Virus record (IMG/VR): IMGVR_UViG_3300023257_000007
Location: 284,223-348,222 of that record
Length of the DNA: 64,000 nt
Reading direction: 5' to 3' (one strand)
Positions 336 to 55,762 of the stretch are shown piece by piece (the first letter of the stretch is position 1; each line of letters begins with the position of its first letter). Under the pieces are notes generated by a model, which was not told the DNA's origin, ran no database searches, and saw only the letters and a program-made list of their open reading frames with translations. The position numbers were made by a program, and so were the translations under genes.

Positions 336-716
336 ATGAAATTTTTAAAAACATATGAAACATATAAAGAACCAATTTGGATGCAAGAAATTTATAAATT
401 GCAAAAGAAATGTGATGATTATTATCATTCAAATTCAAAAGAAATAGATTTAGATCCATTTGCAACAATACCTATTAACATAGAACATAAAGGAATTAAG
501 TATAATTATTTAACAATAACAGAATTTGGTTATTATTTAACAGATGACGATAAATTTTTATCTCTTGATAATGCTAATTCTAATTGGTCAGATTTTTCTT
601 TTAAAGAACATTATGTTAGAGAAAATCCAATATTAATACAAAAATTATTTGATTTAATGAATATTGATTATAATATTATCATAGATATTGAATCTGAAAA
701 ATTAGGTGTTTTGTAA
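336..716 (+). CDS. hypothetical protein with N-terminal leader and C-terminal GL-type tail
   Basis: MKFLKTYETY... ends EKLGVL. Confidence 0.8.
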   Translation: MKFLKTYETYKEPIWMQEIYKLQKKCDDYYHSNSKEIDLDPFATIPINIEHKGIKYNYLTITEFGYYLTDDDKFLSLDNANSNWSDFSFKEHYVRENPILIQKLFDLMNIDYNIIIDIESEKLGVL

Positions 717-731
717 AATGGAGAATTATTA

Positions 732-741
732 TTAATATATA
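732..741 (+). promoter_or_regulatory. putative phage late-promoter motif TTAATATATA (representative copy)
   Basis: Exact intergenic copies oriented toward a start codon 5-44 nt downstream at 732+, 9962-, 11130-, 22216-, 27384+, 29868-, 29912+, 32856-, 33303+, 45844-, 48377+, 51421+, 58669+; analogous to T4 TATAAATA. Confidence 0.6.
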
Positions 742-766
742 TCTGTAAGAAAAATAATATCTTTTA

Positions 767-2152
767 ATGATCAAGAAATACAATGATTTTATTCAACCTA
801 TAAATGAATCAAGAGTTAAAACTTTTGGTTTTCCAAATGAAGTTAATAATGAATTAAGTAAGAATGATATTAAATCTTTGAAAGAAGTAAAATATGGTGG
901 TAAAGGTAAAAAATTATTATCTCAGAAAATTATTAATATTGTTAATAATAAAGAATCTATTGTAATTGAAAATAAAAAGAATAATGAATATCTAATTCTT
1001 ATACCTAAAAGTCAAGGGTTTACAATTTATTATTATAATGGTATTAGAATTCTACCACCACAAACATTAAAAACAAGTCCAGTAAATCAAGATATAACAT
1101 TATTATTTAGTAGAATGTATGAAAAAGAAATCGTACAAATTCCTACACATACAAGCTTTATTAATCAATTCAATCCTAAATATGATCAGTTAAATGTTTA
1201 TGCTACAAAGGATGTAAAGAACATTGAAACATTTGATTATGTTCAAGTAAAGATAGATAAAAATGTTGCAGACAAAGTTAATAGATTGACCAAGGGTATG
1301 GGTTTTGATATAAGAAGCAATCTAAGAGCAAAAATTTCATTCTTAGCTGATCCATTAAAATGGAAAAATAATCCATTAGATCCAAATACATTACTAACGG
1401 TTCAGAATAAAGTTTCATCTATAATATTATTAGATTATTTAGCTGAAATAAAAGATAATTTTGTTCCATCATCAAGTGGATTTTTATTCGAATCATTCAT
1501 AGCAGGCCTTATTGGAGGACACGTAGTTGAAGACAATACCCAAGTTGATATTTACCTACCAGGTAAAGGACCTTATAAATCTAAAAATTATCAATTAAAA
1601 TTATATGATAGGGGTTCAATGTCTAATCTCAATGTTATAAAGAATAACACTACAAGTTTACAAAAAGTAATTAATGGTATGCCTATAAGCCAACAAAATT
1701 TCATATTGATAGGGTTAAAAATAGATGAAAATATAGAAATGTATTTAGTACCTTTTAATGAAGAATTTGAACAATTAATGGAAGATGAAGGATTTTTACC
1801 AAACCAACCTAAATTAACACCTACATTTTTAAGATCATTTAAAACAAAAAAAGCTTTTTCATCAAATATAACTGACAATTTTCAAGAAAGGGGTATTGAA
1901 TATCTTGGTACTTTAAGATTTGGTAATTTTACCAATAAAATAAATAGTGTTAAAAAAGATCTTGGGGATTCTCTTAAAGATGTCTGGGAATCAGTAAAGG
2001 CACTACATGATGAAATTGACACTTTAGTAACTGGTATAAGTGCTAAGAAAAGAAAAATATCAGATAAAACAAGGGTGTTAAAACAATCAAAAAAAGTTGA
2101 TTCTAAAGTTAAAAAATTGTATAAAACAATTATTACAACAGAAGAAGAATAG
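767..2152 (+). CDS. leader-bearing protein with putative PD-(D/E)XK nuclease-like domain
   Basis: Starts MIKKYNDFIQPINE; GFLFESFIAG...VDIY...YQLKLY resembles the E-x-D-x-(Q/E)xK core. Confidence 0.5.
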   Translation: MIKKYNDFIQPINESRVKTFGFPNEVNNELSKNDIKSLKEVKYGGKGKKLLSQKIINIVNNKESIVIENKKNNEYLILIPKSQGFTIYYYNGIRILPPQTLKTSPVNQDITLLFSRMYEKEIVQIPTHTSFINQFNPKYDQLNVYATKDVKNIETFDYVQVKIDKNVADKVNRLTKGMGFDIRSNLRAKISFLADPLKWKNNPLDPNTLLTVQNKVSSIILLDYLAEIKDNFVPSSSGFLFESFIAGLIGGHVVEDNTQVDIYLPGKGPYKSKNYQLKLYDRGSMSNLNVIKNNTTSLQKVINGMPISQQNFILIGLKIDENIEMYLVPFNEEFEQLMEDEGFLPNQPKLTPTFLRSFKTKKAFSSNITDNFQERGIEYLGTLRFGNFTNKINSVKKDLGDSLKDVWESVKALHDEIDTLVTGISAKKRKISDKTRVLKQSKKVDSKVKKLYKTIITTEEE

Positions 2153-2160
2153 GTTCAATT

Positions 2161-2478
2161 TTATATAAACAACCCATAAACTTCTTCATAACATATAACA
2201 TCATACTCTTTTATATATTGTCTAGTCTTTGCAACTAAACCAATACTCTTAATTATAAAAGTGTGCACATAATAATCTAAATTATCAATCTCCTCTTTTT
2301 TAGGATCACCGCCATTATAACCAACCGCATGTTTTACTAAATCAACTAATTCCTCTTCCCACTCTTCCCATGTCAGATCATCTTCTTCATCTTTATCTAT
2401 TCCAAAATACTCAAATACATTATCAGGTACTTCATCAAGATTATTTATTCTTTTTAACTTCTTTTTAAATATATTCAT
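2161..2478 (-). CDS. hypothetical protein
   Basis: 105-aa ORF in a co-oriented run. Confidence 0.7.
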   Translation of the reverse strand: MNIFKKKLKRINNLDEVPDNVFEYFGIDKDEEDDLTWEEWEEELVDLVKHAVGYNGGDPKKEEIDNLDYYVHTFIIKSIGLVAKTRQYIKEYDVICYEEVYGLFI

Positions 2479-2490
2479 AATTTTCTTTAT

Positions 2491-4020: not shown

Positions 4021-4710
4021 TTAATATTTCATTTCTTCTATTGCATATGATGGTATAAAATCATATGTGTAAAATGCATCAACACCTGGATATTTTGGAT
4101 CAGTATATAATCTGAGTTGGTTTAATTTTTTCACATTTATTTTCAATATTAACGGTTTAAACGTATAATCTAAATCAATTTTTTCTTCAATGAAATTATC
4201 AATATATTCTAAAGTATCAAAAAAATAAATCCTTTCTGGTTGATTTTCTAATGTATTTTTAGATTTTATAGTTAATCCACTTTTCAATATTTTGTCTTTA
4301 TGTTTTTGATCTGAAACATGATATAATACGGTTTTTATCCCTTTATCTTCAAAATCAAAATTCTTATTGATAATAATAGAAAGTTTATTATTATTAAAAT
4401 AATCTTTTATAGTTAGATTTCCTTTAATGAATTTGTTATCATCTCCTTTATATTTTGATATATAATAACCAGATATATTTAATAATGAATGTAAATCATC
4501 AAAAAATTCTTTTGTTTTAATATTTGTAAAATTTACAATAACACCATTATTGATTGATATATCATATAATATATGATATTTTTTAAACAAATTTTCAATT
4601 TTCTGTTTTAATTTATCATAAGTAAAAGAATATATTAAACCCTCTACTATTAAAGTGTTTGGTATACCTTTTATATGATCATAATTACGATACTCATTAT
4701 AAGTTTTCAT
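4021..4710 (-). CDS. ADP-ribosyltransferase-fold (Tpt1/KptA-like) protein with leader
   Basis: LYHVS...ILKSGL...ERIYF...YTDPKY; paralog of 4774 and 31125. Confidence 0.55.
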   Translation of the reverse strand: MKTYNEYRNYDHIKGIPNTLIVEGLIYSFTYDKLKQKIENLFKKYHILYDISINNGVIVNFTNIKTKEFFDDLHSLLNISGYYISKYKGDDNKFIKGNLTIKDYFNNNKLSIIINKNFDFEDKGIKTVLYHVSDQKHKDKILKSGLTIKSKNTLENQPERIYFFDTLEYIDNFIEEKIDLDYTFKPLILKINVKKLNQLRLYTDPKYPGVDAFYTYDFIPSYAIEEMKY

Positions 4711-4773: not shown

Positions 4774-5508
4774 TTAATATAATTCATAATTTCCATTTTC
4801 TTCATCAATTATTGTTATTAAATTTTTAGGTATATTATCAACACAGTAAAATCCTTTATCTTCATAATTTGGATCTTCGAAAATATCAATGTTACTATTA
4901 GTTAAATCAATTTCGTAAATAATCCATTTATCATTAATTTTGGATTTTGATCTTTTTTTATAATTATATTCTAATTTCATTCTTGGTATTAATGAATAAC
5001 AATCATTTACATCTTTACATATATAAATTCTATCTAAATGTTTAGATAATTTTGATTTTGATTTTGGTATAAGTCCTTTATTTATTATCTTTTCTTTATA
5101 TTCTTGAATAGATATGTGATAATATATGTCATTTGCAACTTTTTTATCATATTTAGCTTCATAAGTTATAGAAACTTGTTCTAAATATTCAGCATTTTCA
5201 ATTAAATAATCTTCATTATATGACAATTCATTTTCATTTTCTGATAAATTGACTAAATACATTTTAGATGGGAACCATCCATGTCTATCTATCATCAGAG
5301 AATCTAAATATTCTAAGGTAATTGGTATATTTTTAATAAATCTAAAACCATGTAAGTTAATAGTAATTGTATTATTCTGAGATTGTATTGAAAAATCATA
5401 ATTTAATAAATTAAGTTCACTTTTAACATTTTTAATGGTTGAATTTAATTCATGTGTTTTAAGTGTTTCATTTAAAATATATTCTGAATATGTGTTAATC
5501 TTTTTCAT
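4774..5508 (-). CDS. ADP-ribosyltransferase-fold (Tpt1/KptA-like) protein with leader
   Basis: YYHIS...IINKGLIPK...DRIYI...EDPNY; starts MKKINTYSEYILNE. Confidence 0.55.
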   Translation of the reverse strand: MKKINTYSEYILNETLKTHELNSTIKNVKSELNLLNYDFSIQSQNNTITINLHGFRFIKNIPITLEYLDSLMIDRHGWFPSKMYLVNLSENENELSYNEDYLIENAEYLEQVSITYEAKYDKKVANDIYYHISIQEYKEKIINKGLIPKSKSKLSKHLDRIYICKDVNDCYSLIPRMKLEYNYKKRSKSKINDKWIIYEIDLTNSNIDIFEDPNYEDKGFYCVDNIPKNLITIIDEENGNYELY

Positions 5509-9211: not shown

Positions 9212-9802
9212 TTATTTCATATTTTTAAGATGTAAAAAGCAGTTCTCATCTAACTTTATTTTTTTTATATTTTCATTTTGAATTTTTTCTTTTACTAAAA
9301 AATATGCTGTGCCTTTTTCATCATTTGAATCAGTATAAAAAGAAGAAGGTCCAGTAAGGACGGTAAATTCTTTAAAATGTTTTCTATAATTGTTATAAAA
9401 ATTAATTTTCTTATCACCTAACTCACCTACAGAATAAGTTGTATAATTATGTTTATTTATATAATTAAAAATTATATATACAACTTTACCCATAACTTCT
9501 AAGTATTCTTTTTTGTTAGTTAATTTGTCAAAGTTTTCACCAAAACCTCTCTCACTAATAGAAAAGAATATTGTTGGTATTTTATCTAATTCTGTATATT
9601 CAGATAAATATTTACCATTAGATAATTTCTCATCATCTTCTTCAGTTATCATAAAATAAACACTATATAAATTATTGTTTTTAGAAGTAAATTGTTTTTC
9701 TTCTACTTCTATATCTCGCAATTCCTTATAATTTGTAATATATTCTGTTTCTATTAAATTAAATTCAATTTCTTTTATAAATTCATCATATTTAGTTTTC
9801 AT
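9212..9802 (-). CDS. hypothetical protein with leader, paralog of 5782/31817
   Basis: Starts MKTKYDEFIKE; LTNKKEYLEVMGKV...YSVG...KINFY. Confidence 0.75.
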   Translation of the reverse strand: MKTKYDEFIKEIEFNLIETEYITNYKELRDIEVEEKQFTSKNNNLYSVYFMITEEDDEKLSNGKYLSEYTELDKIPTIFFSISERGFGENFDKLTNKKEYLEVMGKVVYIIFNYINKHNYTTYSVGELGDKKINFYNNYRKHFKEFTVLTGPSSFYTDSNDEKGTAYFLVKEKIQNENIKKIKLDENCFLHLKNMK

Positions 9803-10202
9803 CTATTATTTATTTTTAAATTCCAATTCTTTTCCTTTTAATTCTTGGCTTCGTTTTTTCAAATTTTTCAGAAAACGATTAACACGGGGCAAGGAAAATG
9901 TTTCTCCAATAGATTCTTTACGTTTTGGTATAGTTTTCATAATATTTTATTTCCTTTTCTTTATATATTAATTGATTCTTTAGGTATGTTTTTCATTTTC
10001 ATTTATCTTCTTTTTCTTCTGTAGAATTGTTGTTTGTTTTTAATTTTTCTGCCTTTTAACAAATTCTTCATGCTTTTCATCAAAAATATAACCATCTTTT
10101 TTAATCTTTTCAAGAATATGTTCTTCAACATTATCTAACATTTTTTGTTTTCTTTCTTCTCTTGTCATAATTATGATTTTCTTTTTATTATTATATTTTT
10201 CT

Positions 10203-11111
10203 TTAATCTTTTATTTTATTTCTATAATCTTCATTAAAAGGTCTGTTACCATTCAAATCTTCGATAACTTCTTTAACAATAAATCTAAATTTCTTTATGT
10301 GTTTTTCTGATTTTTTATTAAAATAAGATGCAAAATCATCATATAATGATTTAACATCATCTAGGTTACTAACATCTTTTATAAAAGATAATAACTTAGA
10401 ATGTTTATTTAAATTAAACTGTTTAAACTTTTTAACTAAATCATTTGTAATCTTGATTAATCCTTCTAAATTAATTTCACTTATATTATCTTCTATGAAA
10501 TTATCAACATTAAAGTTATTTAACATTTCCATATATTTCCAATTTTGATGTTCTTTAAGTTTTTCAAATAAATCATCTTCATCATTAATATTTAATTCAT
10601 ATAAATAGTGATACACTTGAGATATTCTCGCATTCATTTCGGTATCTAGTGATAAATATAACAAATATATAAATTTATAATAACTTTTATCCTTATCTAT
10701 TTTTAGGTTAGAATAAATATTCCTAATTTTAATATAATGTGGTTTAATATCAACTCCTGTTTTCTCAATATTTTTTTGGATTTCGAAAAACTCTTTTATG
10801 TGTGTTAATTCATGTGATAAAATACCTTTGATTTTTATTAGATCGACATTATTTTTATCAATTTCAATTGTTATTAATATATCATGTAATTTATTTTTCT
10901 TAATAGATGAAAAACTTGGATCACACACTGAATGGTATCTATCTGTTAAAATATATTCTATTCGTAAGTCTATTAATGGAAAATTACCATAATCTAAATC
11001 TAATTGAAATTTATCATTTTTATTTTCAAACAATGATGTAATAAAGTCTGAATATTCCTTTATTTCATCGGAAATTCCTCTACCCTCAAGAAATGATTTA
11101 AAAGTTTTCAA
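10203..11111 (-). CDS. leader-bearing putative zincin metallopeptidase-like protein
   Basis: HELTH (HExxH) with downstream E in EMNAR; TTG start, MKTFKSFLE. Confidence 0.55.
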   Translation of the reverse strand: MKTFKSFLEGRGISDEIKEYSDFITSLFENKNDKFQLDLDYGNFPLIDLRIEYILTDRYHSVCDPSFSSIKKNKLHDILITIEIDKNNVDLIKIKGILSHELTHIKEFFEIQKNIEKTGVDIKPHYIKIRNIYSNLKIDKDKSYYKFIYLLYLSLDTEMNARISQVYHYLYELNINDEDDLFEKLKEHQNWKYMEMLNNFNVDNFIEDNISEINLEGLIKITNDLVKKFKQFNLNKHSKLLSFIKDVSNLDDVKSLYDDFASYFNKKSEKHIKKFRFIVKEVIEDLNGNRPFNEDYRNKIKD

Positions 11112-11153
11112 AAATAATTCTTTTTCTTTTATATATTAAAATTCTTAATTGGT

Positions 11154-22186: not shown

Positions 22187-22264
22187 TTTGTGTAGAAATA
22201 ATTTTTCTTTACACCTATATATTAAAAATAAAAAGTCAAGATAATATTTTTTATGGTTTTAATA

Positions 22265-44230: not shown

Positions 44231-44240
44231 AATTTATATA

Positions 44241-44291: not shown

Positions 44292-45806
44292 TTATGGATT
44301 TAAAATGTCAGCAAATTTGTTATACCATTTCTTAATTGAAGGTACCCAAATTTTCTTCCAAGGATCATCAGTTGTTACATAAGCATGTGTCTTTTTAACA
44401 TATTGTAGTAACGATGTTGCAACTTCCATATTCTCAATTCTTCTTGCATATGTAATTAAATTTTCAAGTTCCTTTGCAGTTAATTTCTCACCTTTTTTAG
44501 CCATACCAATAGCAGCAGTTACCGCTCTAGATCTATCGATTCTTTTTGGTGGCATAGGAGCTTCTTCTGGTTTCTTGTATACAAGAGCAATATCTTTTGG
44601 TGGAAATACTGCCAATAAATCAAGATATTCTGCAAACTGAACAGCTGCAGTATTACCAACATGAGAATTAAATAACTTTTTAATTGCTTCTTTAGATAAC
44701 TGATTTCCTGATGCTTCTTTAGCTTCTGTATATTCTAATGATGCACTTGCCCAAGAACGTGGAGATGGCCAGTTAGGAGTTTCTTTATCAGGATCTAAAT
44801 GATGAAGTATGTCTTTATTGAAATCAATATAACCAATTACGTCAGGATCCATATAATCTTGTTTAATAGCCCATGTCACCCATTCATCTTTTGTTGTAAT
44901 AAGATTATAGTGAGTAAAACGGTTAGCTAGAGCAGTACCTAAATCAGTTACTGTTGGTTCTTCTTCACGTCTATTACCAGCAGCAATAATTAACCATTTA
45001 TCAGGTAATTTATATTCACCAACTTGACCATCAAGACATAGTTGAAGTGAAGCTGATAATACATGCTCATTAGCACGGTTCAATTCATCAAAAAACATAA
45101 TACCACCTTTTCCATTTTCACCATTATCACTAGGGAAAATCTTAGGTAATCTAAATGTCGTTCTTCTTGAAGTGTCTCCTTCAACTTTTACACCAGCAGC
45201 ATCTTTAGTATCTCTACCTTTAACAACTTCAATTTCTGGAAGGCCAATAAAATCAGTAGGCTCAATTGTTGCTAAATGCCATACTAAACAATCAACTTGA
45301 AGTTCTTTGGCTGTTGCATTAATAACATCTGTTTTACCAATACCTGGAGCACCCCAAATAAATGTAGAAAACATTTTATTTGGATATTTTGTCTTCATTT
45401 TAAACTTACGAACAAGAATATTACTCATTTCTGAAGGAACATAATTACCTACTTCTGGATTAGGATGCTCTAAAGGCACCTTATCCTCGTTCATAGCTAA
45501 TTTTGCATCTTCAATTGATAATTCTTCTGTTTCTTCTTCTTCAGAAAGATTATCAATTTCTTTTTCTATTCCTGATATTTTACTTTCATCTGGTTTACTA
45601 CCATATGGAAAAATATCTACTTTACCTTCTAATGCGCCTTTCTTCTTCAAGAAGAGAGCATAATATAACCAAGCAGCTTTTTTAAATTTCTTTTCAAAGA
45701 AATCCCATACTTTGTCGACCATACCACTTATCCAATTTTCGTTAAGTTCGCTATCGTACATGTGCTTTTCGTTTAAAAAGTTCTTGTAATTTACTAATTT
45801 TTTCAT
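44292..45806 (-). CDS. MoxR/dynein-related AAA+ ATPase with leader
   Basis: GAPGIGKT, FFDELNRA, AAGNR, ALANRF, PSPRSW; starts MKKLVNYKNFLNE. Confidence 0.9.
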   Translation of the reverse strand: MKKLVNYKNFLNEKHMYDSELNENWISGMVDKVWDFFEKKFKKAAWLYYALFLKKKGALEGKVDIFPYGSKPDESKISGIEKEIDNLSEEEETEELSIEDAKLAMNEDKVPLEHPNPEVGNYVPSEMSNILVRKFKMKTKYPNKMFSTFIWGAPGIGKTDVINATAKELQVDCLVWHLATIEPTDFIGLPEIEVVKGRDTKDAAGVKVEGDTSRRTTFRLPKIFPSDNGENGKGGIMFFDELNRANEHVLSASLQLCLDGQVGEYKLPDKWLIIAAGNRREEEPTVTDLGTALANRFTHYNLITTKDEWVTWAIKQDYMDPDVIGYIDFNKDILHHLDPDKETPNWPSPRSWASASLEYTEAKEASGNQLSKEAIKKLFNSHVGNTAAVQFAEYLDLLAVFPPKDIALVYKKPEEAPMPPKRIDRSRAVTAAIGMAKKGEKLTAKELENLITYARRIENMEVATSLLQYVKKTHAYVTTDDPWKKIWVPSIKKWYNKFADILNP

Positions 45807-45989
45807 AATTATGATTGATTGCTTTTTTATTTTAATATAAATCTATATATTAAAAAATAAATCCTTTTTTCTATGTTTTAAAAATTTTATTAAAATTTAC
45901 ATTTTAATTGGTAAAAACAGTTACCCTAGATTTAAAACTTAAACTATATTTTTTATTAAAATAAAAAGAAAAATAAATTTTAATTAAAA

Positions 45990-46794: not shown

Positions 46795-47218
46795 TTACAA
46801 GAGTCCCATTTTATCGCCTTATGTGTCTATATTCTTTTAAGATATCTTCATTAATAAAATCAATATTTTTTTTATATATATTTATTAAATCTTTTATATA
46901 TCCTCGTTCTACATAATTTTTTTGAAATTTATAAGATTTTAAACTATTTACAATATTATTATAAACTTCGTCACTTATTTTCATATAATTTTCATAATCA
47001 GTTTCAAAATTGGTTACTCTAATTGTATTTGAAGCGATTATTATAGAATTATCGTCATTTTTTAATGTTATTAAACGGTCAATATTTAAGTGGTTTATAT
47101 TAACATCTAATTCTGAAATTTTGATATAATTATTAAGTATATCATTGATTTGTTGTTTAATTTTCTTTTTAAAAAAATTATCAATAATCAAATTTTCATA
47201 TGTTTTTAAATACTTCAT
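46795..47218 (-). CDS. leader-bearing protein; GDKMGLL tail present but out of frame
   Basis: ORF 46811-47218 ends HIRR*; ggc gat aaa atg gga ctc ttg taa at 46818-46795 lies in another frame. Confidence 0.65.
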
Positions 47219-47877
47219 TACATCAATCCCATTTTATTTGCATTATAAAGGTCAGGATTTTCTTTCCAAAACCATTCCCAATAACCATCTAAATTATAAT
47301 AAGGTAATTGGTTATCATGACAATATAATTCTCTTAATCCTTTAGGTATTTCAGGTAATTTAGTTAATTGGTTATTATCACAATATAATTCTTTTAATTC
47401 TTCAGGCAATTCAGGTAATTCAGTTAATTGGTTATCACCGCAATATAATTGTATTAATTCTTTAGGTAATTCAGGTAATTCAGTTAGTTGGTTATTAGAA
47501 CAATATAATGTTTTTAATTCTTTAGATAATTCAGGTAATTCAGTTAATTGGTTATTAGCACAATATAGTCCTTTTAATCCTTTAGGTAATTCAGGTAATT
47601 CTGTTAATTTGTTATTAGCACAATCAAATTCTTCTAATTCTTTAGGTAATTCGGTTAATTCAGTTAGTTGGTTATAATGACAATATAATATTTTTAATCC
47701 TTTAGGTAATTCAGGTAATTTAGTTAATTTGTTATCATCACAATATAAATAAATTAACCCTTTTGGCAATTCAGGTAATTTAGTTAAACCTAAACCATTT
47801 AAATTTAATGTTTTACCATCAACACTTAAATGGTCTTTAATTAATTTATTTTCTGAATATGTTTTCAAATACTTCAT
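47218..47877 (-). CDS. LRR protein (about eight 20-aa LPELP repeats) with leader and tail
   Basis: 60-nt tandem units; starts MKYLKTYSE; ends ANKMGLM. Confidence 0.9.
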   Translation of the reverse strand: MKYLKTYSENKLIKDHLSVDGKTLNLNGLGLTKLPELPKGLIYLYCDDNKLTKLPELPKGLKILYCHYNQLTELTELPKELEEFDCANNKLTELPELPKGLKGLYCANNQLTELPELSKELKTLYCSNNQLTELPELPKELIQLYCGDNQLTELPELPEELKELYCDNNQLTKLPEIPKGLRELYCHDNQLPYYNLDGYWEWFWKENPDLYNANKMGLM

Positions 47878-48359
47878 TATAACAATTCTTTTAAGATACT
47901 AAATTGACCATCTTCGATTAATTTCTCAGCATTTTTCTTCTTAAAGAACTTCACATCATAAATCTCTTTAGATCTATAATAATTTTTCTTTATTTGATTC
48001 TTATTCTTTCTTAAATAAGGTATTAATTCTTCCTTGCTCATTATAATTACAAAATATTTGAGTTTCTTAATAGTACCAGATTTTCTATAATAAATTATAG
48101 ATTTATTTTTCATTCTAGATTGAGCAAAATCTTTACTTAATTTAATACCTGTTTCTTCTTCCAATTCTTTGAGAGCAGTATCAAAATTTTTTTGTTTTTT
48201 CTCAACGTGTCCTTTAGGTATAGACCATTTATCATCATATTTCTTAAATTTCCTAGGTTGTACTAATAATATTTTATTATTGACAATTATTACAATTCCG
48301 GCTAAATCATCAACTTTAGATTCTAATAGAAAGTCTTCGTAAGATATTATATTGTTCAT
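47877..48359 (-). CDS. NUDIX hydrolase with leader
   Basis: PKGHVE.......ALKELEEETG Nudix box. Confidence 0.88.
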   Translation of the reverse strand: MNNIISYEDFLLESKVDDLAGIVIIVNNKILLVQPRKFKKYDDKWSIPKGHVEKKQKNFDTALKELEEETGIKLSKDFAQSRMKNKSIIYYRKSGTIKKLKYFVIIMSKEELIPYLRKNKNQIKKNYYRSKEIYDVKFFKKKNAEKLIEDGQFSILKELL

Positions 48360-48391
48360 GAATTTATATATTTATTTTAATATATACATTT

Positions 48392-49111
48392 GTGGAAAGG
48401 TTAAAATCATATAAATTATTTACTGAATCAACAACTGTAATTGGAAATTATATAAGACCAGATAAATTATCAGAAGAAGGTGAAAAATTAAATCACTATT
48501 TGCAAAATAAAGTTAAAGAAATTAAGGGCATATATCCTATTAAAAACTTTAGAGAAACTTGGTCAAATGGAGTTATAGACAAGTATATTTTCACAATACA
48601 TACATTTGACAAATTTAAAATCAAAGATATTACTGATAAATTCAAATATCTTAATATTGAACCAGAAATAGACCAAAATACTTATGATAAGTATGTAACA
48701 TACACTTTTAATAAAGGTGAATTGGATTGGATTTTTGATGCTAATAAAATGGGATTACTTGAAAATAATAGTGAAAATAATAGTGAAAATATTGAAGATA
48801 TATTAGAAAATTGGTTATTAAGTATGTTTCCATTTATGGATGAACGTGATGTTTACATAAATGAATTATATTATGGTGGATATTCAGTAGAAATATGGAT
48901 GGCAGGTTTTGATCCTGATGAAGATATCAAATTGTTAGAAGATTGGTTTGAAGAAACATTAGACGAATTAGAAAAATTAAAAATTGGTGATAGTTTGCGA
49001 TCTGTTATTGATATTGAAGATGGTCAATTTACAATCAATTTTGAATTTGATGAAGATAACAAAGATATATGGAATTGGGCCGTTGAAGGCGATAAAATGA
49101 ATTTATTTTAA
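48392..49111 (+). CDS. two-module fusion protein with internal and terminal tails
   Basis: Internal DANKMGLL then ENNSENNSEN; ends GDKMNLF. Confidence 0.75.
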   Translation: MERLKSYKLFTESTTVIGNYIRPDKLSEEGEKLNHYLQNKVKEIKGIYPIKNFRETWSNGVIDKYIFTIHTFDKFKIKDITDKFKYLNIEPEIDQNTYDKYVTYTFNKGELDWIFDANKMGLLENNSENNSENIEDILENWLLSMFPFMDERDVYINELYYGGYSVEIWMAGFDPDEDIKLLEDWFEETLDELEKLKIGDSLRSVIDIEDGQFTINFEFDEDNKDIWNWAVEGDKMNLF

Positions 49112-49903
49112 ATGAAACATTTAAGAAGAATAAACGAAAGTAAATATAGTATAACAAATAAAGGTGTGACTGAAATACTTAATAGAGCATCTTATGAATT
49201 TGGTAAAAACGAATTTGATGAAGAATATTATACATCATTATTAAAATCAATCATCAACAATGCAGACCAATCTCAATTAGATTTTATAATAGAAGAAATT
49301 TTAAAAAATGAAGATTTAGTTATTGCATATATTTACAATCTAATTGATATATTTATTAAAGATAAATCAGAAAAATCATTTAAAAAATTAACAGAGACAT
49401 TAAAATCTACACCTAAAAAAGAATGGCAACATATTGTTGATTATCTTATTAATATTGATTTTAATAACGAAGTTAAAAAAATATGTGAATTTTTATTTAA
49501 CAATGGTTTTGATATTAATACCCCTTATATGACAAATGGTCAAAACCTTATATTTTGTGCTTTTTACATGCCAAAAGAAACATTAGAATATTTAATTAGT
49601 AAAGGTTTAAACATTCACCATACTGATAATAAAGGTGATAATGTTTTATGTTATCAAGAATTAGATCACCACACATTAGATTTATTAATTAACAATGGAA
49701 TTAAAATACCAGACAAATTTTTAGATAATAGTTTTTATGTAGTTGCTGATGATAAAGGAACTAAATTATGGGCTAGTACTATATTATTAATGTTGAAAAA
49801 AAATCCAGAAATCTATATTAAGATTAAAGACAAATTAAAAGATTCAATACTTAAAAAAATACCTAACTATATTAAAAATGCATCAAATTTAGGAATTTTA
49901 TAA
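49112..49903 (+). CDS. ankyrin-like repeat protein with leader and tail
   Basis: G.DIN....GQ.L, GLNIHHTDNKGDNVL; ends ASNLGIL. Confidence 0.65.
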   Translation: MKHLRRINESKYSITNKGVTEILNRASYEFGKNEFDEEYYTSLLKSIINNADQSQLDFIIEEILKNEDLVIAYIYNLIDIFIKDKSEKSFKKLTETLKSTPKKEWQHIVDYLINIDFNNEVKKICEFLFNNGFDINTPYMTNGQNLIFCAFYMPKETLEYLISKGLNIHHTDNKGDNVLCYQELDHHTLDLLINNGIKIPDKFLDNSFYVVADDKGTKLWASTILLMLKKNPEIYIKIKDKLKDSILKKIPNYIKNASNLGIL

Positions 49904-49933: not shown

Positions 49934-50832
49934 ATGAAAATATTACAACGTAAATTTGTAACGAGATTAATAGGAGTTCCTAATTGGAAATATTATGGTT
50001 ATGAATATTGGGATGTTGTTCCTGATATTCATAAACAAACTTTAGAAATTGAACATAATACAAGAAGTGGTAAATTCAGAATTTATATTGACAGAGATGA
50101 AATTGAAGTAATAAAATACGAAGAAGAATTAGAAGCTATCATAAAAGCTTATAGAAAATATTTAAATGATGATAAAATTAGATAAAGATTATGTGATAAT
50201 TTGGGGTGCAAGAACTCATAATGGTTATGTGTATCGTAAAGAAGAATTTCCAGTTGATATTGAGAAAGAATTTTATGTCATGTCTGAATATTCTAATGAT
50301 TTTAAATTAAAAAATATATGTGCAATGACAAATGTATGTATTGATAATATTGGTTTTTATGTAGAAAATTTCAGATTTATAGATACACAAATAGGCAAAA
50401 TATGTAAAAAACTTGGTGGTTTAGGTATAAAACAATATATTCATACACAATCTATGGGTTCACATTATAGTGATACAACAACGGTTCACAAATTAATTGG
50501 TTTTTATATATCACCGGTTTCAATGTATGATAATTTACCAGCTAAAATAATAAAGAAACAAAGAAAATTAAAATTAAATAGAATTAAAAATGCATAAAAT
50601 TGGAAATTTTTTTAGAATTATATTAAATATTAAAGTAGAATATCACTTTGAGTTTTTTATTTATTTAGATGAACAAACAGGAGAAATCGTAGAAGATGAA
50701 ATAACTGGACATATTAAATGGATGGATAAATTCTCAATAAGATCAACTACTAGAAACAAAGCTCAAAAATTAGCTTGGTGTAAAGTAAATGCAAAGTTTC
50801 CTGATTTAGTAAATAAATTGTGGATGTTTTAA
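49934..50832 (+). other. three hypothetical genes (49934-50185, 50166-50597 with RK tail, 50590-50832)
   Basis: Overlapping ORFs; 50166 ends KKQRKLKLNRIKNA. Confidence 0.7.
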
Positions 50833-51388
50833 ATCAATCCCATGTTACTTCCTTGAAAAAACCAATGTGGATCTGACATTATTTTATCTAAATCTAATTG
50901 TATCATATAATGATGCAAATCTTCTTCTTCATATAATTTAATACAAGTAAATTCATCAAGAATTTCTAATAGTTTATTAAGATCAACATCACAATCTACA
51001 CGTACTATACCACTTACAGTAGAATATATATTGGGTATTTCATCTTTATCATATATTTCAACACCAATTTTTGTAAATTCTTGTCTTAGATATAAGACAA
51101 ATTGAGATATTCTTTCAACATATTCTTCGTTTCCTGTATCATTTGCTACAGCAGTCCATTTTTGTAGATTTTCATATATTTTCAAATATTTCATTTTGAA
51201 CCTTCTAATTCTTTAAGACTTATTAAAAAAATATCATCTTTTAATAAATAATCAATATCTTCTACACTATAATATTCATCTTCAATATAAATAGTCATCC
51301 CCTGAGCAGGTACAAAATTTAAACTTACAGATATATCATTTATATCATCATCTATATAAGTTTTTAAATCAAAAATAATTGCAAACAT
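50829..51388 (-). other. two hypothetical genes (50829-51194 with leader and tail; 51191-51388)
   Basis: MKYLKIYEN...GSNMGLI. Confidence 0.7.
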
Positions 51389-51444: not shown

Positions 51445-53317
51445 TTGAAATCATATAAAACCTTTGAATGGAGAGAATCTGAAGTGGTTTGTTTACCAAT
51501 TGAAGTATTTAGTGAATATTCAAATTCTATGGGCCAATCACAAAAAATAAATATTGATGTTCAAGAATATTTAAAATCAAAAGGATTAAAAACACTTTCA
51601 GGTAATGACATGGTAGTCAGTTCTTTTACAAATTTTATTGTTATTATATTTGAATCTAAAAGAACATATTATACTTTTTATGATACTATTGAAGGTATTA
51701 AAGGAGTTTACAACAATCCAGAAATATTAGATACAGTAACATCTAATGAATTATTAAATGGCGATTTAGATTATATGTTTGATGCAAATAAATTAGGATT
51801 ATTATGAAATATTTAAAAACATATGAAAATCTTATAGAACCAGATTATGATAATATTGATTTTATAAAAGTAATGGACCAAAATAATAATCAAATTAATG
51901 GTTTAACATATAAATTTAAAGCTACACGTTCACGTTTAAAAAAAATATCCAGCTTTTACGACCATGATGAATCACTAAAATTAAAAATATTACTAAAAGA
52001 AATGAAAATGAAAATACATAAATTATTTTTAACTAACATAAAACTAAAAGAAGAATATTATAAAAGAAACCCAGATATTAAAGCTGGTGAAGATTTAGGA
52101 TTATTATGAAACATTTAAAAACATATGAAGGGTTTAGTAAACCTAAAATGGTAGAAAAACCAGAACAAATTTATTTCACAAACATCAAAGCCAATGATAT
52201 TTTTGAAGCATGGAAAATTCTTGAAAAACATTTCAATATACCAAAAGTTGATAGTTCTCTTAATATTGATTCAAATCTTTTTCTAAAATCAATTAAAAAT
52301 AAACAATATAAAGAAATGTATATTCGACACATGGAAGAACATGGTAAACATTTTACAACTAAAGCTATTGTATATGATAAACATAACAATACACCCTTTA
52401 CAGTTGTTAATATAAATGACGTTAATTTTGGATATGAAAATTTTAATTTTTATGATTGGGCTGAAGAGAACGGTTATAGTTATATTCTTCAAGGAAATGA
52501 TCTAGGATTATTATGAAAAACAATTCAATATGAAATACTTAAAAACAAAAAAAATATTCGAAAACCAATCCAAAGAAATATCTGCACTTTTAAATGATAT
52601 CAATGTTAATAATATTAAAGGTATTCAAGAATATATTGATAAAGGTTATGATTTAGATTATAAAGATGAAGATGGTGATTTTGCTTTAATATATGCTACT
52701 TTAAATTATATAATAAATATTAGTGATGGTCCAAATAATTCTAAAGGTGAATTTTCAACAATAGAATTTTTAATTGACGCTGGTGCTAATTGGAATATTA
52801 AAGATAACGATAATAAAACATTTTGTGATTATTTAGAAGATAAAGATAAAGAAAAACTAAAAGATAAATATCCTGATAAATATGGACAATATATATCAAG
52901 TAAATTAGGACTATTATAATGATATATTTAAAAACATATAAAGAATCCAAAGAGGATTTTGATACTTTTAAACGAATTGAAGTTTGGAGTAAACTTAGAC
53001 CTTATTACAATAAATATGGTTCATTTGAATTAAATGTTAATATTACATTTAAGTTTGGTTTTGAAGAAGATGAAGTAAAAGATTACATATTTACTAGAAA
53101 CATAAAGAAAATAAAATATACATCACTAGATTATATTGAATTACATTCAACATTGACAGTTATAGATAAAGATGGTGGTACAAGAAGTGAAGAACAAGTA
53201 AGAAATTTTAGAAGTTGTGATAATAAATCTTTAAACGAAGTATTTAAATATATTAAAAATATATCAAATGAAGACATCATTTCATATATAGAATCAAATA
53301 GAATGGGCTTATTATAA
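51445..53317 (+). other. array of five leader- and tail-bearing genes (51445, 51804, 52106, 52530, 52919)
   Basis: All end [K/D/R][L/M]GLL; junctions of the form ggattattatgaaa.atttaaaaacatatgaa. Confidence 0.85.
52530..52919 (+). CDS. ankyrin repeat protein with leader and tail
   Basis: G.DLDYKDEDGDFALIYA...FLIDAGANWNIKDND. Confidence 0.75.
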   Translation: MKYLKTKKIFENQSKEISALLNDINVNNIKGIQEYIDKGYDLDYKDEDGDFALIYATLNYIINISDGPNNSKGEFSTIEFLIDAGANWNIKDNDNKTFCDYLEDKDKEKLKDKYPDKYGQYISSKLGLL

Positions 53318-53320
53318 ATA

Positions 53321-53348
53321 AAAAAGCCACTTTTTGAGTGGCTTTTTT
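53321..53348. terminator. bidirectional terminator
   Basis: aaaaagccact-tttt-gagtggcttttt between convergent genes. Confidence 0.75.
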
Positions 53349-53368
53349 AATATCTTTACAGTTAAAGA

Positions 53369-53647
53369 TTACACATTAACTGCTTCAGCTAGCCCTTTAC
53401 CAGCTTTAAATCTAACGACATTCTTTGCAGGAATATCAATTGATTCGCCAGTTCTCGGGTTTCTACCTTTACGTGCTTTTCGAGCAACTACTTTAAAGGA
53501 ACCAAAGTTCACAAGTTTCACATCTTCGCCTTTTGCAAGGGATTCTTTAATCACTTCCATGATTACGTTAATTACTTCTTTGCTAGCTTTTTTTGTATTG
53601 CCTGTAGCTTCGGCAACTGCATTTGTTAGGTCTTTTTTATTCGCCAT
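53369..53647 (-). CDS. hup: HU family DNA-binding protein
   Basis: NKKDL...FGSF...RKARKGRNPRTGE.I.IPA..V.RFKAGK; TATCTTTG (-7-like) at 53693-53700. Confidence 0.95.
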   Translation of the reverse strand: MANKKDLTNAVAEATGNTKKASKEVINVIMEVIKESLAKGEDVKLVNFGSFKVVARKARKGRNPRTGESIDIPAKNVVRFKAGKGLAEAVNV

Positions 53648-53861
53648 AATTCAAATTTTAAGGGTTAAACATTAATTTATAATTTCTTACTTCAAAGATA
53701 AGGAACTTTCTACCTGAAAAAAAATATTTCGTAAATTATTTTCACATTTTATTTTCACATTCATCTCGTAAGTATAAAAATAATATCAAGAAAATCCGAA
53801 TTTGTTTAATAAAAATTCAATAAAAATCAAAGAAATTTTAAATTGTTTATTGGAGATACTT

Positions 53862-54765
53862 TTATATGAGACCTAGTTTGTTTCCTTCTAAATAATATTT
53901 TATTTCTTCAACATTATCAAATTCCATACAATTTCTTTGACTACCATCTTCATTTTTTTTATTAACGCGAAAAAAAAATACTTTTTCTCATTGTTTCAAA
54001 ATATAATACAGCATATAAAGTTGAATGTATATTATAACCTTCATAAGAAGGTATATTATGAACCCAATTAAATCCTAATTTATTAAGTTTCTTATATAAA
54101 TCAATACCTTCATCAACAGTATCATAATTAAACTTAAAAGCAATGGAATTAGAAATATTAGATTCATTTAAAACTGGTTCTATTTCTTCTATTATATCTT
54201 GTATAAAATGTTGAGCTTCAAATACAGTTAAATCACCCATATCATTGCCTTTAGGAACGGTAAAAGCATAATCACCATATTTAATAAGCTTTTTTCCACC
54301 TGGATCATTATCTAACTTATCATTATCATATATAACCACCTTAATCTGTGGCAAAATATCAAACCATTGTTTTAAGTTTGAAGGATCATTACAAAAAACA
54401 GCAATAGCAGGATAACCAGATTGATGTATTCTAGCAGCATCAAAAATACCTTCAACTATAAACAAATATTTATCACCAGGTTTTATTGATTCTATACCCC
54501 ACGCACCAATTTTCTTACCTTTATATTCTTCACCAAAGTAAGTATAATACTTAGTATCAGGTTTATTCATTCCTTGTGATATATTCTTAGGGAAATTTGG
54601 ATTGTATTTTTGATAACCAACCATTTGACCAGACATATTATAAATATTAAAATATACATCACCTTTATCATTAATGAAAACATCATTGTGTTCAGGATCT
54701 ATACCTCTTTCTCTTAAATGAGATTTAGTATCAACTAATTCATTATATGTCTTTAAATATTTCAT
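53862..54765 (-). CDS. Toprim/primase-like protein with leader; tail reached only by a frameshift in a T9 run
   Basis: FIVEGIFDA...YDND...DMGD; ORF stops at 53962, but with T8 it continues to EGNKLGLI*. Confidence 0.7.
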
Positions 54766-55762
54766 TATAATAAATCCATCTTTTTACTTTCAATCCATTG
54801 TTTCATTTCTTTACTGAAAAAATATTTATATAAAGGAATCAATTGTTTCGTTCTTTTTAATTTATCTAAATTTTCTTTTTTTAAAATATTATCTCTTTCA
54901 AATATACCAGACTTTCTTACAGTAAAAATATTGTCATTATTATTATACATTGATACCTCACAAATATGTATCCAAGGCCAATTATTTACAATCTGAACTT
55001 GACGAATACCATCACCCCAATCTACATATTGATCAAATATAATATTACTACCAATATATTTTCTCATAGAAATAATTAATTCAGACATTTCATCAAACAT
55101 CTTTTGTTCAATATCATCTAATTTCTCTTTTTGTTTAATATAATCTTCGTAAGTTTTCATTAAATCAATCCCATTTTATTACCATCAAATATATAAGAAT
55201 ATTTCTTTTTTATATCAGATCGAACTTTCAATTCTCTAAATCTTTCAGGATTTTTTATAAGAAATTCATCTTGAAATAAATAAGTGTTAATGATGTGTCT
55301 ATATATATTATCATTTGAAAAATCTATATCATCAATATTTTTATTAAAATATAAAAACAATTTAATATAAAGATTAGCATATACTCTAGACGTATAAGCA
55401 ATAGATAATATTTCTTGTAAAATATTAGTTTTGCTAAAATCAAAACCTAATTCAATTAAATATTCAAACATATCAATAAAACCTTTTTGATCTTTTATGA
55501 TGTCATCATTTGTTCTGTATATTGTATGTTTTATTATTGGTAATTTGTCAATTTGTGCATCTTTTCCAAACTCATCATATATTCTCTTAGCTAATTTTTT
55601 AGATTCTTCCCAGTTTTCATTTTTATATTCACCTTTATTAGTATAATTATAATATCTAGGATTTAATAAACTTGAGAATTTTCCTTTCAAAAATTGAGGA
55701 TGGTCTTCATATTCTGAAAGTTTAGTAAATTCTAATTCTTCATATGTTTTTAGGTATTTCAT
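54765..55762 (-). other. two leader- and tail-bearing genes (54765-55160, 55160-55762)
   Basis: MKTYEDYI...SKKMDLL; MKYLKTYEE...GNKMGLI. Confidence 0.8.

Follow-up and report, generated by a model that had tools for sequence, protein, structure and literature searches.

Because many proteins in one stretch of a huge-phage genome begin with similar short peptides, we asked whether these starts form a genuine set of leaders, and whether they might direct the proteins into the phage head as the capsid targeting sequence (CTS) of T4 does. The window analysed here comprises 64,000 nucleotides, positions 284,223 to 348,222 of the 348-kb contig IMGVR_UViG_3300023257_000007. A preliminary description of the window had claimed that about 35 proteins carry a T4-like leader and cluster behind a shared 10-mer, and had inferred that they are expressed late, packaged in the head and delivered at infection, possibly for anti-defence or host takeover. 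We found that the observation stands, whereas the interpretation is supported only in part.

Leaders and an upstream motif in the window

We recognized two kinds of leader. Class A is MK(Y/H)LKTY(E/N)E, and class B is [YF]xx[YF][ILV]xE, which is the pattern of the T4 CTS MKTYQEFIAE (PMC8442874). In the window we counted 14 class-A starts, 6 strict class-B starts and about 13 looser CTS-like starts (for example MKTYENFIEK, MKTFKSFLEG and MIKKYNDFIQPINE), for a total of about 33, in agreement with the earlier figure (Table 1). Across the parent contig, 77 of 550 ORFs begin with such a peptide.

We considered whether the similarity could be due to chance or to the composition of a 25% GC genome, since AT-rich codons favor K, N, Y, I, F and L, and MK is a common start. 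This explanation is excluded by the position of the peptides. On the 88-kb contig the tripeptide KTY occurs 21 times in the first 12 residues and 6 times in the other approximately 25,000 residues, and on the 348-kb parent contig [YF]xx[YF][ILV]xE occurs 22 times at N-termini and 30 times internally, a 14-fold enrichment (p = 8e-16). Enrichments at N-termini against the rest of the same proteome range from 14-fold to more than 40-fold, and exact MKYLKTYE occurs at ORF starts in 63 stretches of other viral contigs. The leaders are also portable: the 42 class-A leaders found with the strict pattern fall into 35 BLAST clusters (a broader pattern counts 56).

Of the domains that had been named on leader proteins, LRR, NUDIX, ankyrin (two proteins), AAA+ and Toprim/primase-like were confirmed by Pfam or PHROGs searches. 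The ART-like assignment is only a weak lead, the zincin-like DUF2201 protein has no clear leader, and no "nuclease-like" leader protein was identified.

Enrichment of the 10-mer, TTAATATATA, had been set beforehand as a test. The window holds 15 exact copies against 3.8 expected, and 0 of 100 shuffles reached 15. On the 348-kb contig there are 83 copies, of which 64 are intergenic although only 8.9% of the genome is intergenic, and 65 lie within 60 nt upstream of a same-strand start. By our reading, about 28–30 of the 33 leader genes lie in units headed by the 10-mer or a close variant. The blocks at 14–27 kb and 56–61 kb carry the motif only before the TnpB-like gene and a zinc-ribbon, endonuclease-like gene, as had been stated.

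The motif is not specific to leader genes, and it heads many leaderless genes. Its core, AATATATA[AG], lies about 19–23 nt upstream of tail-spike, baseplate and other large virion genes in this contig, and it also lies upstream of portal, protease and capsid genes in a relative, G003 (described below). We conclude that it behaves as a late promoter. Of the class-A genes, 30 of 42 lie in motif-headed units, against 35% of other genes.

Table 1. Leader ORFs and motif copies in the window. "Tail" denotes the C-terminal signal described below.
Position	Strand	Feature	Sequence and context
336..716	+	class-A leader ORF	MKFLKTYETY; tail variant ...EKLGVL; TTAATATATA 8 nt upstream
767..2152	+	loose CTS-like leader ORF, 461 aa, no family hit	MIKKYNDFIQPINE; motif 25 nt upstream
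4021..4710	-	loose leader ORF; paralogue of 4774-5508 and 31125-31805	MKTYNEYRNY
4774..5508	-	loose leader ORF	MKKINTYSEYILNE
9212..9802	-	class-B leader ORF	MKTKYDEFIKE
10203..11111	-	loose leader ORF, 302 aa	MKTFKSFLEG; motif 18 nt upstream
11154..11765	-	loose leader ORF; phrog_7683, function unknown	MKNYITHDSFIE
27457..27858	+	class-A leader plus tail ORF; orphan	MKHLKTYEN ... NRMGLL
28423..28812	-	class-B leader ORF	MKTTFNDFINE
28830..29054	-	class-B leader ORF	MKTTFNDFINE
29089..29862	-	loose leader ORF	MIYRFENYSEK; motif 5 nt upstream
31125..31805	-	loose leader ORF, closest to T4 by eye; possible ART-fold protein (lead only)	MKTYENFIEK
33318..33776	+	class-A leader plus tail ORF	MKYLKKYEL ... 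ENLGLM; motif 5 nt upstream
33776..34180	+	class-A leader plus tail ORF, start at an internal Met	MKYLKKYES ... NNLGLL
34177..34587	+	class-B leader plus tail ORF	MKNYITFLNE ... SRLGLM
34798..35187	-	loose leader ORF	MKRIKKFNELNEE
43931..44230	-	loose leader ORF	MKKVKLFEEFTQQE
44292..45806	-	class-B leader on an AAA+ (AAA_5, MoxR-like) ATPase	MKKLVNYKNFLNE
46811..47218	-	class-A leader ORF	MKYLKTYENLII
47218..47877	-	class-A leader plus tail on an LRR protein (LRR_4, E 5e-42)	
47877..48359	-	class-B leader on a NUDIX hydrolase	MNNIISYEDFLLE; promoter variant 5 nt upstream
48392..49111	+	loose leader plus tail ORF	MERLKSYKLFTE ... DKMNLF; motif 5 nt upstream
49112..49903	+	class-A-like leader on an ankyrin protein	MKHLRRINE ... 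SNLGIL
50829..51194	-	class-A leader plus tail ORF	MKYLKIYEN ... SNMGLI
51445..51807	+	loose leader plus tail ORF, first gene of a five-gene late unit	MKSYKTFEWRE ... NKLGLL
51804..52109	+	class-A leader plus tail ORF	MKYLKTYENLIEP ... EDLGLL
52106..52516	+	class-A leader plus tail ORF	MKHLKTYEGF ... NDLGLL
52530..52919	+	class-A leader plus tail on an ankyrin protein	MKYLKTKKIFEN ... SKLGLL
52919..53317	+	class-A leader plus tail ORF	MIYLKTYKES ... NRMGLL
53962..54765	-	class-A leader on a Toprim/primase-like protein (phrog_849, E 7e-26)	
54765..55160	-	CTS-like leader plus tail ORF	MKTYEDYIKQKE ... KKMDLL
55160..55762	-	class-A leader plus tail ORF	MKYLKTYEELEF ... NKMGLI; promoter variant TTATATATATGG upstream
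318..327	+	late-promoter motif	TTAATATATA
732..741	+	late-promoter motif	
9962..9971	-	late-promoter motif	
11130..11139	-	late-promoter motif	
22216..22225	-	late-promoter motif	before the IS605 OrfB/TnpB-like gene
27384..27393	+	late-promoter motif	
29868..29877	-	late-promoter motif	one of a divergent pair with 29912
29912..29921	+	late-promoter motif	
32856..32865	-	late-promoter motif	
33303..33312	+	late-promoter motif	5 nt before the start codon
41294..41303	-	motif copy	about 270 nt upstream of the 1611-aa T9SS-tailed gene
45844..45853	-	late-promoter motif	before the AAA+ operon
48377..48386	+	late-promoter motif	5 nt before the start codon
51421..51430	+	late-promoter motif	heading the 51445-53317 unit
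58669..58678	+	late-promoter motif	before a zinc-ribbon, endonuclease-like gene

Because many leader genes have the promoter core ending 4–8 nt before the ATG, or overlap the previous stop (TAATG or ATGA), we asked whether the conserved first 8–10 codons could instead be an mRNA-level requirement, allowing efficient initiation on leaderless transcripts or on tightly coupled ORFs in a host phylum that hardly uses Shine-Dalgarno sites, with the peptide as a by-product. Leaders are over-represented on genes whose promoter ends 9 nt or less from the ATG (12 of 22 against 10 of 46, p = 0.012), and Thr6 is ACA in 31 of 32 cases against 52% genome-wide; both hint at an RNA-level contribution. The tail glycine is likewise GGA in 73% against 29%. 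However, synonymous sites in K2, Y3, L4, K5, Y7 and E9 follow genome codon usage, and substitutions across phages are conservative at the amino-acid level (K/R, Y/H/F, L/I). Class-B leaders also occur behind promoters about 20 nt upstream, and the same peptide pattern occurs in the T4 CTS, in scaffold repeats and in the capsid propeptide, none of which lies at an mRNA 5' end. We therefore consider this explanation unlikely. In the AlphaFold2 model of one leader-plus-tail family, residues 1–9 have pLDDT below 50 while the domain is confident (mean pLDDT 83), such that the leader is predicted to be disordered.

Head genes in related phages and the interpretation of the leaders

The window's TerL fragment hits LR756501/3 and LR745206 best, at 37–39% identity, and the nearest GenBank relatives of the phage are the 634–735-kb Mahaphage genomes. 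Relative G003, whose TerL is 37–40% identical, carries the same leaders and tails. It encodes Portal_T4 (E 5e-67) and gp23 (E 6e-27), plus an 811-aa protein with an S77-like domain at 21.9 bits, a Pfam hit that is below the curated cut-off; a PDB sequence search did not find T4 gp21. Relatives carry a T4-type head module of gp20-like portal, S77-like protease fused to a scaffold, and gp23-like capsid protein. The 67 homologues of the protease–scaffold fusion carry 10–16 tandem repeats of N-I-x-Y-S-E-Y-[ILV]-A-E, and 52 of 63 capsid-protein N-termini in the clade contain Y-x-E within residues 21–60, which in the sequences printed lies in a conserved WM(A/S)EYAE. These presumed cleavage motifs resemble the leaders. 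In the 735-kb genome, three paralogues just upstream of the portal start with class-B leaders, although this complete genome has no MK[YH]LKTY at all. The 348-kb contig itself yielded no S77 or gp23 match and is rated 49% complete by CheckV, and therefore the link to a protease comes from relatives only.

Taken together, we interpret the window as part of the accessory arm of a huge T4-related phage of Bacteroidota, from salt-lake metagenomes and probably about 700 kb in size, and the leaders as most likely cleavable capsid-targeting propeptides on an unusually large packaged cargo. We hold this view with moderate confidence, somewhat above even. Each leader is an amphipathic 8–15-residue extension that resembles one unit of the clade's tandem scaffold repeat (Y-S-E-Y-I/L-A-E). 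In this view the leader would let a late-made protein co-assemble with the scaffolding core of the prohead; an S77-type prohead protease, fused to the scaffold in relatives, would remove it by cutting after Glu, at [ILV]-x-E in class B and Y-x-E in class A; and the mature proteins would stay in the head and leave with the DNA at infection. Our data establish that the leaders are real, specific to N-termini, portable, under protein-level selection and, as judged from sequence, mostly transcribed from the same promoter type as virion genes. Packaging, cleavage, ejection and any anti-defence role are inferred only, from sequence and without virion proteomics or RNA data (no RNA run was listed), and the suggestion of anti-defence rests mainly on one neighboring Acb3 homologue. 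Class A lacks the canonical (I/L)xE site, the cargo would include a 504-aa AAA+ ATPase and a CCA-adding enzyme, which would be unusual, and a complex prediction gave no answer.

A conserved C-terminal tail

We additionally identified a signal that the preliminary description had missed and that complicates a simple CTS-only picture. Of the 550 ORFs, 105 end in a conserved helix plus K(M/L)GL(L/I). This tail is separate from the leader and lineage-specific, and it is shared by late leader proteins and by arrays of small genes outside late units: only 10 of 67 tail-only genes lie in motif-headed units.

This distribution is one reason to consider that the peptides are docking signals for a cellular or phage hub other than the capsid, such as a sliding clamp, an unfoldase or protease, or another machine, in which case the proteins would be ordinary intracellular effectors. 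The last five residues, K-[ML]-[GND]-L-[LIF], resemble C-terminal clamp-binding motifs (QLGLF, QLxLxL), the lineage-specific dialect fits a co-evolving common partner, and the phage encodes a ClpB/ClpC-like AAA+ protein. However, searches found no clamp and no ClpP, and the N-terminal leader, unlike the tail, matches the T4 CTS and the scaffold repeat and tracks the late promoter. We also infer that G/N at position -3 followed by a hydrophobic residue would fit a simple helix-capping motif. This possibility remains doubtful.

Alternatively, leader and tail could be the conserved ends of exchangeable gene cassettes, in which the roughly 45-nt tail–stop–start–leader junction would serve mainly as a homologous-recombination handle that shuffles accessory genes between co-infecting phages, with precedents in the T-even internal-protein loci and PeSL cassettes. 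Tandem arrays carry a repeated junction (for example ...AAAATGGGATTATTATAATGAAATATTTAAAAACATATGAA), and the same architecture, with ...K(F/Y)N(L/I)stop overlapping MK(Y/H)LK.., occurs in many other AT-rich viral contigs. Dialects are lineage-wide rather than family-specific, as concerted evolution would give, and the codon fixation at Thr6 and the tail glycine is in keeping with this idea. On the other hand, 53 of 97 tail genes have no adjacent downstream gene, tails and leaders often occur separately, synonymous variation in most codons argues against recent homogenization, and the tail is a confidently predicted helix in two different folds. We regard this explanation as unlikely, though it is compatible with the CTS reading.

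Comparison with described systems

The closest system is the CTS on the T4 internal proteins IPI–III and Alt (Mullaney & Black 1996, as cited in PMC5694885 and PMC3012670). There too a 10–20-residue N-terminal peptide with the pattern aromatic-x-x-aromatic-[IL]-x-Glu is found on otherwise unrelated proteins that are transcribed together with head genes, and a T4-type portal, protease, scaffold and capsid protein are present in relatives of our phage. The phage described here differs in having tens of carriers per half genome rather than about four, a second dialect (MKYLKTYE) without (I/L)xE, and carriers that include LRR, ankyrin, NUDIX, AAA+ and Toprim proteins; in the relatives, protease and scaffold are fused and the scaffold consists of tandem cleavage-motif repeats. 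The parallel is drawn from sequence alone.

The ejection or inner-body proteins of the giant phages phiKZ, 201phi2-1 and SPN3US are likewise numerous head-internal proteins whose N-terminal propeptides are cut after Glu, by an S77-type protease at (S/A/G)-x-E (PMC5694885, PMC7411985). Those propeptides are mostly longer than 100 residues, are not a short shared leader, and belong to a different phage lineage with no T4-like scaffold identified. The Dar anti-restriction proteins of phage P1 are head-packaged, injected counter-defence cargo (PMC9024508, PMC12810830), but their incorporation goes through a protein hierarchy (Hdf/DarA) and not through a common cleavable leader.

For the K(M/L)GL(L/I) tail, a possible analogy is offered by the C-terminal cargo-loading peptides of encapsulins, in which a short conserved peptide containing a hydrophobic-Gly-x-Leu motif is found on diverse cargo of an HK97-fold shell. 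The analogy is one of sequence and not of demonstrated binding, and tail-only genes are mostly outside late units. The tail also includes a 12-residue helix that appears as a confident terminal helix of the protein's own model.

Genomic context of the window

The window has 25% GC, with small, densely packed ORFs, and a tRNA scan of it found no tRNA genes. It covers bases 24,017–88,016 of an 88-kb record that is identical over 88,016 bases to the last 88 kb of a 348,222-bp IMG/VR contig, which CheckV rates 49% complete. We examined the whole contig, on which we called 550 ORFs. A megablast search with 24 kb against GenBank phages returned no match. Public runs that hold the window are salt-lake and marine metagenomes.

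To place the phage we took advantage of its T4-type terminase fragment, whose best hits are the 735-kb and 634-kb "uncultured phage" genomes (LR756501/3 and LR745206, 37–39% identity), followed by ordinary T4-like phages. These are the Mahaphage genomes of Al-Shayeb et al. 2020, predicted to infect Bacteroidetes (PMC7162821). A 1611-aa protein with MAM, GEVED and type-IX-secretion (T9SS) sorting domains likewise points to a Bacteroidota host. Judged by best hits, host indication and size (348 kb at 49% estimated completeness), the phage fits the Mahaphage clade. Phages of 600–735 kb are known only from metagenomes, and most of their genes have no assigned function.

N-terminal leaders and the upstream motif

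The preliminary description had claimed that about 35 proteins in the window carry an N-terminal leader like the T4 capsid targeting sequence (CTS), and our counts confirm that observation. Two related peptides occur. Class A is M-K-(Y/H)-L-K-T-Y-(E/N)-E; a strict pattern finds 42 on the 348-kb contig and a broader one finds 56. Class B is [YF]-x-x-[YF]-[ILV]-x-E within the first 15 residues, which is exactly the pattern of the T4 CTS MKTYQEFIAE (PMC8442874); depending on the order in which the two patterns are applied, 21 or 22 ORFs are class B. Class A is only partly similar to the T4 sequence, through its KTYE core. In the window we count 14 class-A starts, 6 strict class-B starts and about 13 looser ones, about 33 in all.

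These similarities are more than chance. On the 88-kb record KTY occurs 21 times in the first 12 residues and 6 times in about 25,000 other residues, and on the 348-kb contig the class-B pattern occurs 22 times at N-termini and 30 times in about 97,000 internal positions, a 14-fold enrichment (p = 8e-16). The 42 strict class-A proteins fall into 35 BLAST clusters, of which only the LRR family is a real paralogue group. A PSSM built from the scaffold repeats described below was too strict to rank leaders, and a simple pattern was used instead. Pfam and PHROGs searches with about 40 leader proteins gave no family for most of them. The domains that were confirmed are LRR, NUDIX, two ankyrin proteins, an AAA+ ATPase and a Toprim/primase-like protein, whereas the ART-like assignment is only a weak feature and structure lead for the paralogues at 4021, 4774 and 31125. 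A homologue search with the protein encoded at 27457–27858 found only the protein itself, so that this protein is an orphan for which no alignment could be built. A full-text literature search for MKYLKTY and related strings found no relevant paper, and the Mahaphage paper does not mention such leaders.

We asked whether the leader is a peptide signal or a nucleotide signal. Synonymous sites of K2, Y3, L4, K5, Y7 and E9 follow the genome's codon usage; only Thr6 is fixed, as ACA in 31 of 32 cases against 52% genome-wide. Exact MKYLKTYE sits at ORF starts in 63 stretches from many other AT-rich viral contigs, and the variants seen in those contigs are conservative at the protein level (K/R, Y/H/F, L/I). 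An AlphaFold2 model of a 20-member family with both the leader and the C-terminal tail described below has a mean pLDDT of 83 but a pLDDT below 50 for residues 1–9; in this model the leader is therefore a flexible extension, not part of the fold.

Enrichment of the upstream motif between genes had been proposed beforehand as a test, and it was found. TTAATATATA has 15 copies in the window against 3.8 expected. On the 348-kb contig there are 83 copies, of which 64 are intergenic although only 8.9% of the sequence is intergenic, and 65 lie within 60 nt upstream of a same-strand start, with spacings that form two classes, 5–9 nt and 16–26 nt. The core AATATATA(A/G) lies about 19–23 nt upstream of several large genes, which include a tail-spike-like gene and head the units that contain the baseplate hub and wedge genes. 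In a relative it also lies upstream of the portal, protease and capsid genes. On this sequence-level evidence alone, the motif is the late promoter of the phage, and leader genes would be expressed late with head genes. By unit, 30 of 42 class-A genes lie behind the motif, against 10 of 67 genes with the C-terminal tail only and 35% of other genes. In the window, by our reading, about 28–30 of the 33 leader genes are in such units when close variants are counted. The motif is not exclusive to leader genes.

The motif is not that of the T4-type late promoter, in which gp55/gp33/gp45-dependent TATAAATA lies about 10 nt upstream of late transcription starts: TATAAATA has 25 of 206 copies intergenic on the 348-kb contig, roughly chance, and the element here is (T)TAATATATA(A/G). 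A conserved 125-aa ORF beside the portal in relatives (..LYYEIVLSKGKG..) resembles the late sigma factor gp55, but PHROGs gave no hit for it and no copy was found in the 348-kb contig.

Head genes in relatives and the reading of the leaders

The parent contig, which is only half a genome and ends just after the terminase, yielded no S77 protease or gp23 match. We turned to a relative, G003 (344 kb, TerL 37–40% identical), which carries the same MKYLKTY leaders, the same C-terminal tails and the same LRR family. G003 encodes a T4-type portal (E 5e-67) and a gp23-type capsid protein (E 6e-27), and between them lies an 811-aa protein whose N-terminus matches the T4 prohead protease family (S77) weakly, at 21.9 bits against a cut-off of 27. 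By TBLASTN this protein matches annotated prohead core protease/scaffold genes of E. coli jumbo phages and hits many cyanophage records, and its best hits are the 634–735-kb genomes at 50–56% identity. IMG/VR holds 348 relatives, including contigs of 640 and 676 kb.

The middle of this fusion is a run of 10–16 tandem 14-residue units, N-I-x-Y-S-E-Y-(I/L/V)-A-E-N-L-D, followed by a glutamine-rich spacer and a conserved C-terminal domain. Its only PDB sequence match is a designed coiled coil. In most of the capsid-protein sequences that we inspected directly, a conserved WM(A/S)EYAE lies about 30 residues from the first Met, and 52 of 63 capsid N-termini contain Y-x-E within residues 21–60. The probable cleavage context of this clade is thus (Y)-(S)-E-Y-(I/L)-A-E, which includes both [ILV]-x-E and Y-x-E. 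Class B has the first kind of site, whereas class A has the second, in 24 of the 42 strict members; class B also copies the whole unit. In the 735-kb genome, three paralogues directly upstream of the portal begin with class-B leaders, although that genome has no class-A leader at all.

The preliminary description had read the leaders as signals of late-expressed, head-packaged proteins delivered at infection, and we consider that interpretation partly supported. For the N-terminal peptide the evidence fits: it looks like a portable, flexible, protein-level signal that mimics a scaffold unit, sits on late-transcribed proteins, and occurs in a T4-related phage whose relatives have the matching putative protease–scaffold. 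In T4, all internal head proteins join the core through a 10–20-residue CTS, the CTS is removed by gp21, which cuts after Glu, and T-even internal proteins are diverse apart from this leader (PMC5694885, PMC3012670). The leaders and their N-terminal enrichment are results of the analysis, but presence in virions, packaging, cleavage and ejection are inferences from sequence. Three points give us pause. Leaders are over-represented on genes whose promoter ends 9 nt or less from the ATG, which probably gives leaderless mRNAs (12 of 22 against 10 of 46, p = 0.012); Thr6 shows codon fixation; and large enzymes are among the carriers. A single complex prediction, of the scaffold fusion plus a window cargo protein, returned no answer and counts neither for nor against the reading. 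The case is best described as a T4-type capsid-targeting system that differs from that of T4 in being greatly expanded, in a Mahaphage-related huge phage, together with a previously undescribed C-terminal signal. The scale would be new: 77 of 550 ORFs on half a genome, against a handful in T4.

If the leaders are capsid-targeting signals, a simple sequence rule would assign about 12–14% of the ORFs in this contig to a class of packaged and probably injected proteins, which would explain part of why such phages need huge heads. It would also point to a rich, easily mined source of counter-defence and takeover proteins, here LRR, ankyrin, NUDIX, AAA+, Toprim and possibly ART enzymes. The tandem-repeat scaffold suggests how a CTS could work, by mimicking a scaffold unit, a mechanism that is still unsettled in T4. 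A short portable leader could also be useful for loading foreign proteins into large capsids.

A conserved C-terminal peptide and other features

The preliminary description missed a second signal. We found that 105 of 550 ORFs (about 19%), 20 of them in the window, end in a conserved peptide with the consensus (D/E)(L/I)xx(Y/L)(I/L)(E/N)(A/G/S)xK(M/L)GL(L/I)-COOH. The strict five-residue end occurs 96 times at C-termini and 13 times internally, and the carriers fall into 81 BLAST clusters. Of the 42 strict class-A proteins, 32 have the tail, whereas by our count few class-B proteins do. Long arrays of roughly 100-aa proteins carry the tail without a leader and lie mostly outside late units. 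Other AT-rich contigs carry a different dialect, ...K(F/Y)N(L/I)-COOH, and the same ankyrin family carries either dialect depending on the phage. As with Thr6 of the leader, one codon stands out while neighbouring synonymous sites drift freely: the tail glycine (codon -3) is GGA in 73% of cases against 29% genome-wide.

Two AlphaFold2 models of unrelated folds place a confident 12-residue C-terminal helix that ends at the Lys, followed by a short non-helical end; G or N followed by a hydrophobic residue fits a helix cap, by our inference. Fold searches with both models gave no significant match, the first being only SH3/chromo-barrel-like. In tandem units the stop overlaps the next start, which gives a conserved junction of about 45 nt. 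We considered whether the tail is purely a translational-coupling device and dropped this idea, because 53 of 97 tail genes have no adjacent downstream gene. We also dropped the idea that the tail mimics the scaffold's C-terminus (...FKNI, ...LKNL), as no co-variation was seen between scaffold ends and cargo tails across lineages.

The lineage-wide dialect suggests a common partner or concerted evolution, but no partner was identified. Compared with the beta-clamp-binding pentapeptide (Q-L-[SDG]-L-[FL]-like), positions -4 to -1 fit but -5 is Lys in 81 of 105; a search with the T4 clamp C-terminal domain was negative and no clamp gene was found, and a ClpP search was likewise negative. Clamp-binding, degron, cargo-loading and recombination-handle readings of this putative sorting or docking signal all remain possible. 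A more speculative reading, which we regard as unlikely but of considerable interest if true, is that a lineage of AT-rich huge phages runs a two-address system. In this view a cleavable N-terminal peptide that mimics one unit of the scaffold's tandem repeat would load dozens to more than 100 different proteins into the giant head, and the lineage-specific C-terminal helix and tail, shared by these packaged proteins and by arrays of small genes outside late units, would dock them onto one common hub in the newly infected cell. The phage would then deliver or express a very large, modular effector arsenal that converges on a single target.

Further features of the window, the parent contig and the relative G003 are collected in the table. 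In G003 the terminase match is also in two pieces, as in the window, and the gene may therefore be interrupted by a mobile element or intron. In addition to the mobile-element-type genes in the window, the parent contig holds a 10-member family of homing-endonuclease-like genes.

Coordinates of further features in the window, its parent contig and a relative
Location	Strand	Feature
Window 5512-55762 (20 ORFs, e.g. 27457-27858, 51445-53317, 55160-55762); 105 ORFs on the parent contig		Conserved C-terminal peptide (D/E)(L/I)xxY(L/I)E(A/G/S)xK(M/L)GL(L/I)-stop, with and without the N-terminal leader
Window 318-327, 33303-33312, 48377-48386 and others		Class of late-promoter copies ending only 4–8 nt before the start codon, which implies leaderless mRNAs; enriched for leader-peptide genes
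Window 3179-3994	-	Clear homologue of the CBASS inhibitor Acb3 (Pfam PF25187, E 2e-37) with an extra N-terminal region of about 87 residues; directly downstream of two leader-bearing paralogues
Window 17190-17585, 24668-25318, 26008-26478; 53369-53647	- (all)	N-termini that, by eye only, resemble peptidyl-tRNA hydrolase Pth2, CoaB-like and CoaC-like enzymes, and an HU-like DNA-binding protein
Window 20990-22186; 41293-42369; 58702-59748	-; -; +	Mobile-element-type genes, two behind a late-promoter copy: an IS605 OrfB/TnpB-like gene (22216) and a zinc-ribbon protein (58669); the third is a DUF723/treble-clef protein
Window 22558-24666	-	Four tandem paralogues of about 150–195 aa with hydrophobic N-termini and a shared ...NIIK(L/I)N end; probably membrane proteins
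Window 36188-41023	-	1611-aa protein with MAM, GEVED and a T9SS C-terminal sorting domain, in a stretch of 35–42% GC against 25% elsewhere; looks host-derived; internal near-repeats around 38248-38667
Window 42429-45806	-	Operon pairing a MoxR-like AAA+ ATPase carrying a class-B leader with a DUF2201 metallopeptidase/VWA protein; a 99-aa leader ORF lies between them
Window 61752-62651 and 62702-62926	+ and -	T4-type large terminase ORF that stops after its N-terminal domain, followed by a small zinc-ribbon ORF on the opposite strand
Parent contig (G001) L005:5936-8092, L005:1394-1939, L009:14075-15382	+, -, -	ClpB/ClpC-like double AAA+ protein without an N-domain, translation initiation factor IF3, and a tRNA nucleotidyltransferase, the last with a class-B leader behind a 5-nt-spaced promoter
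Relative G003 L087:5467-7902, and 66 homologues (L094-L172)	- (G003)	Putative prohead protease fused to a scaffold of 10–16 tandem 14-residue units
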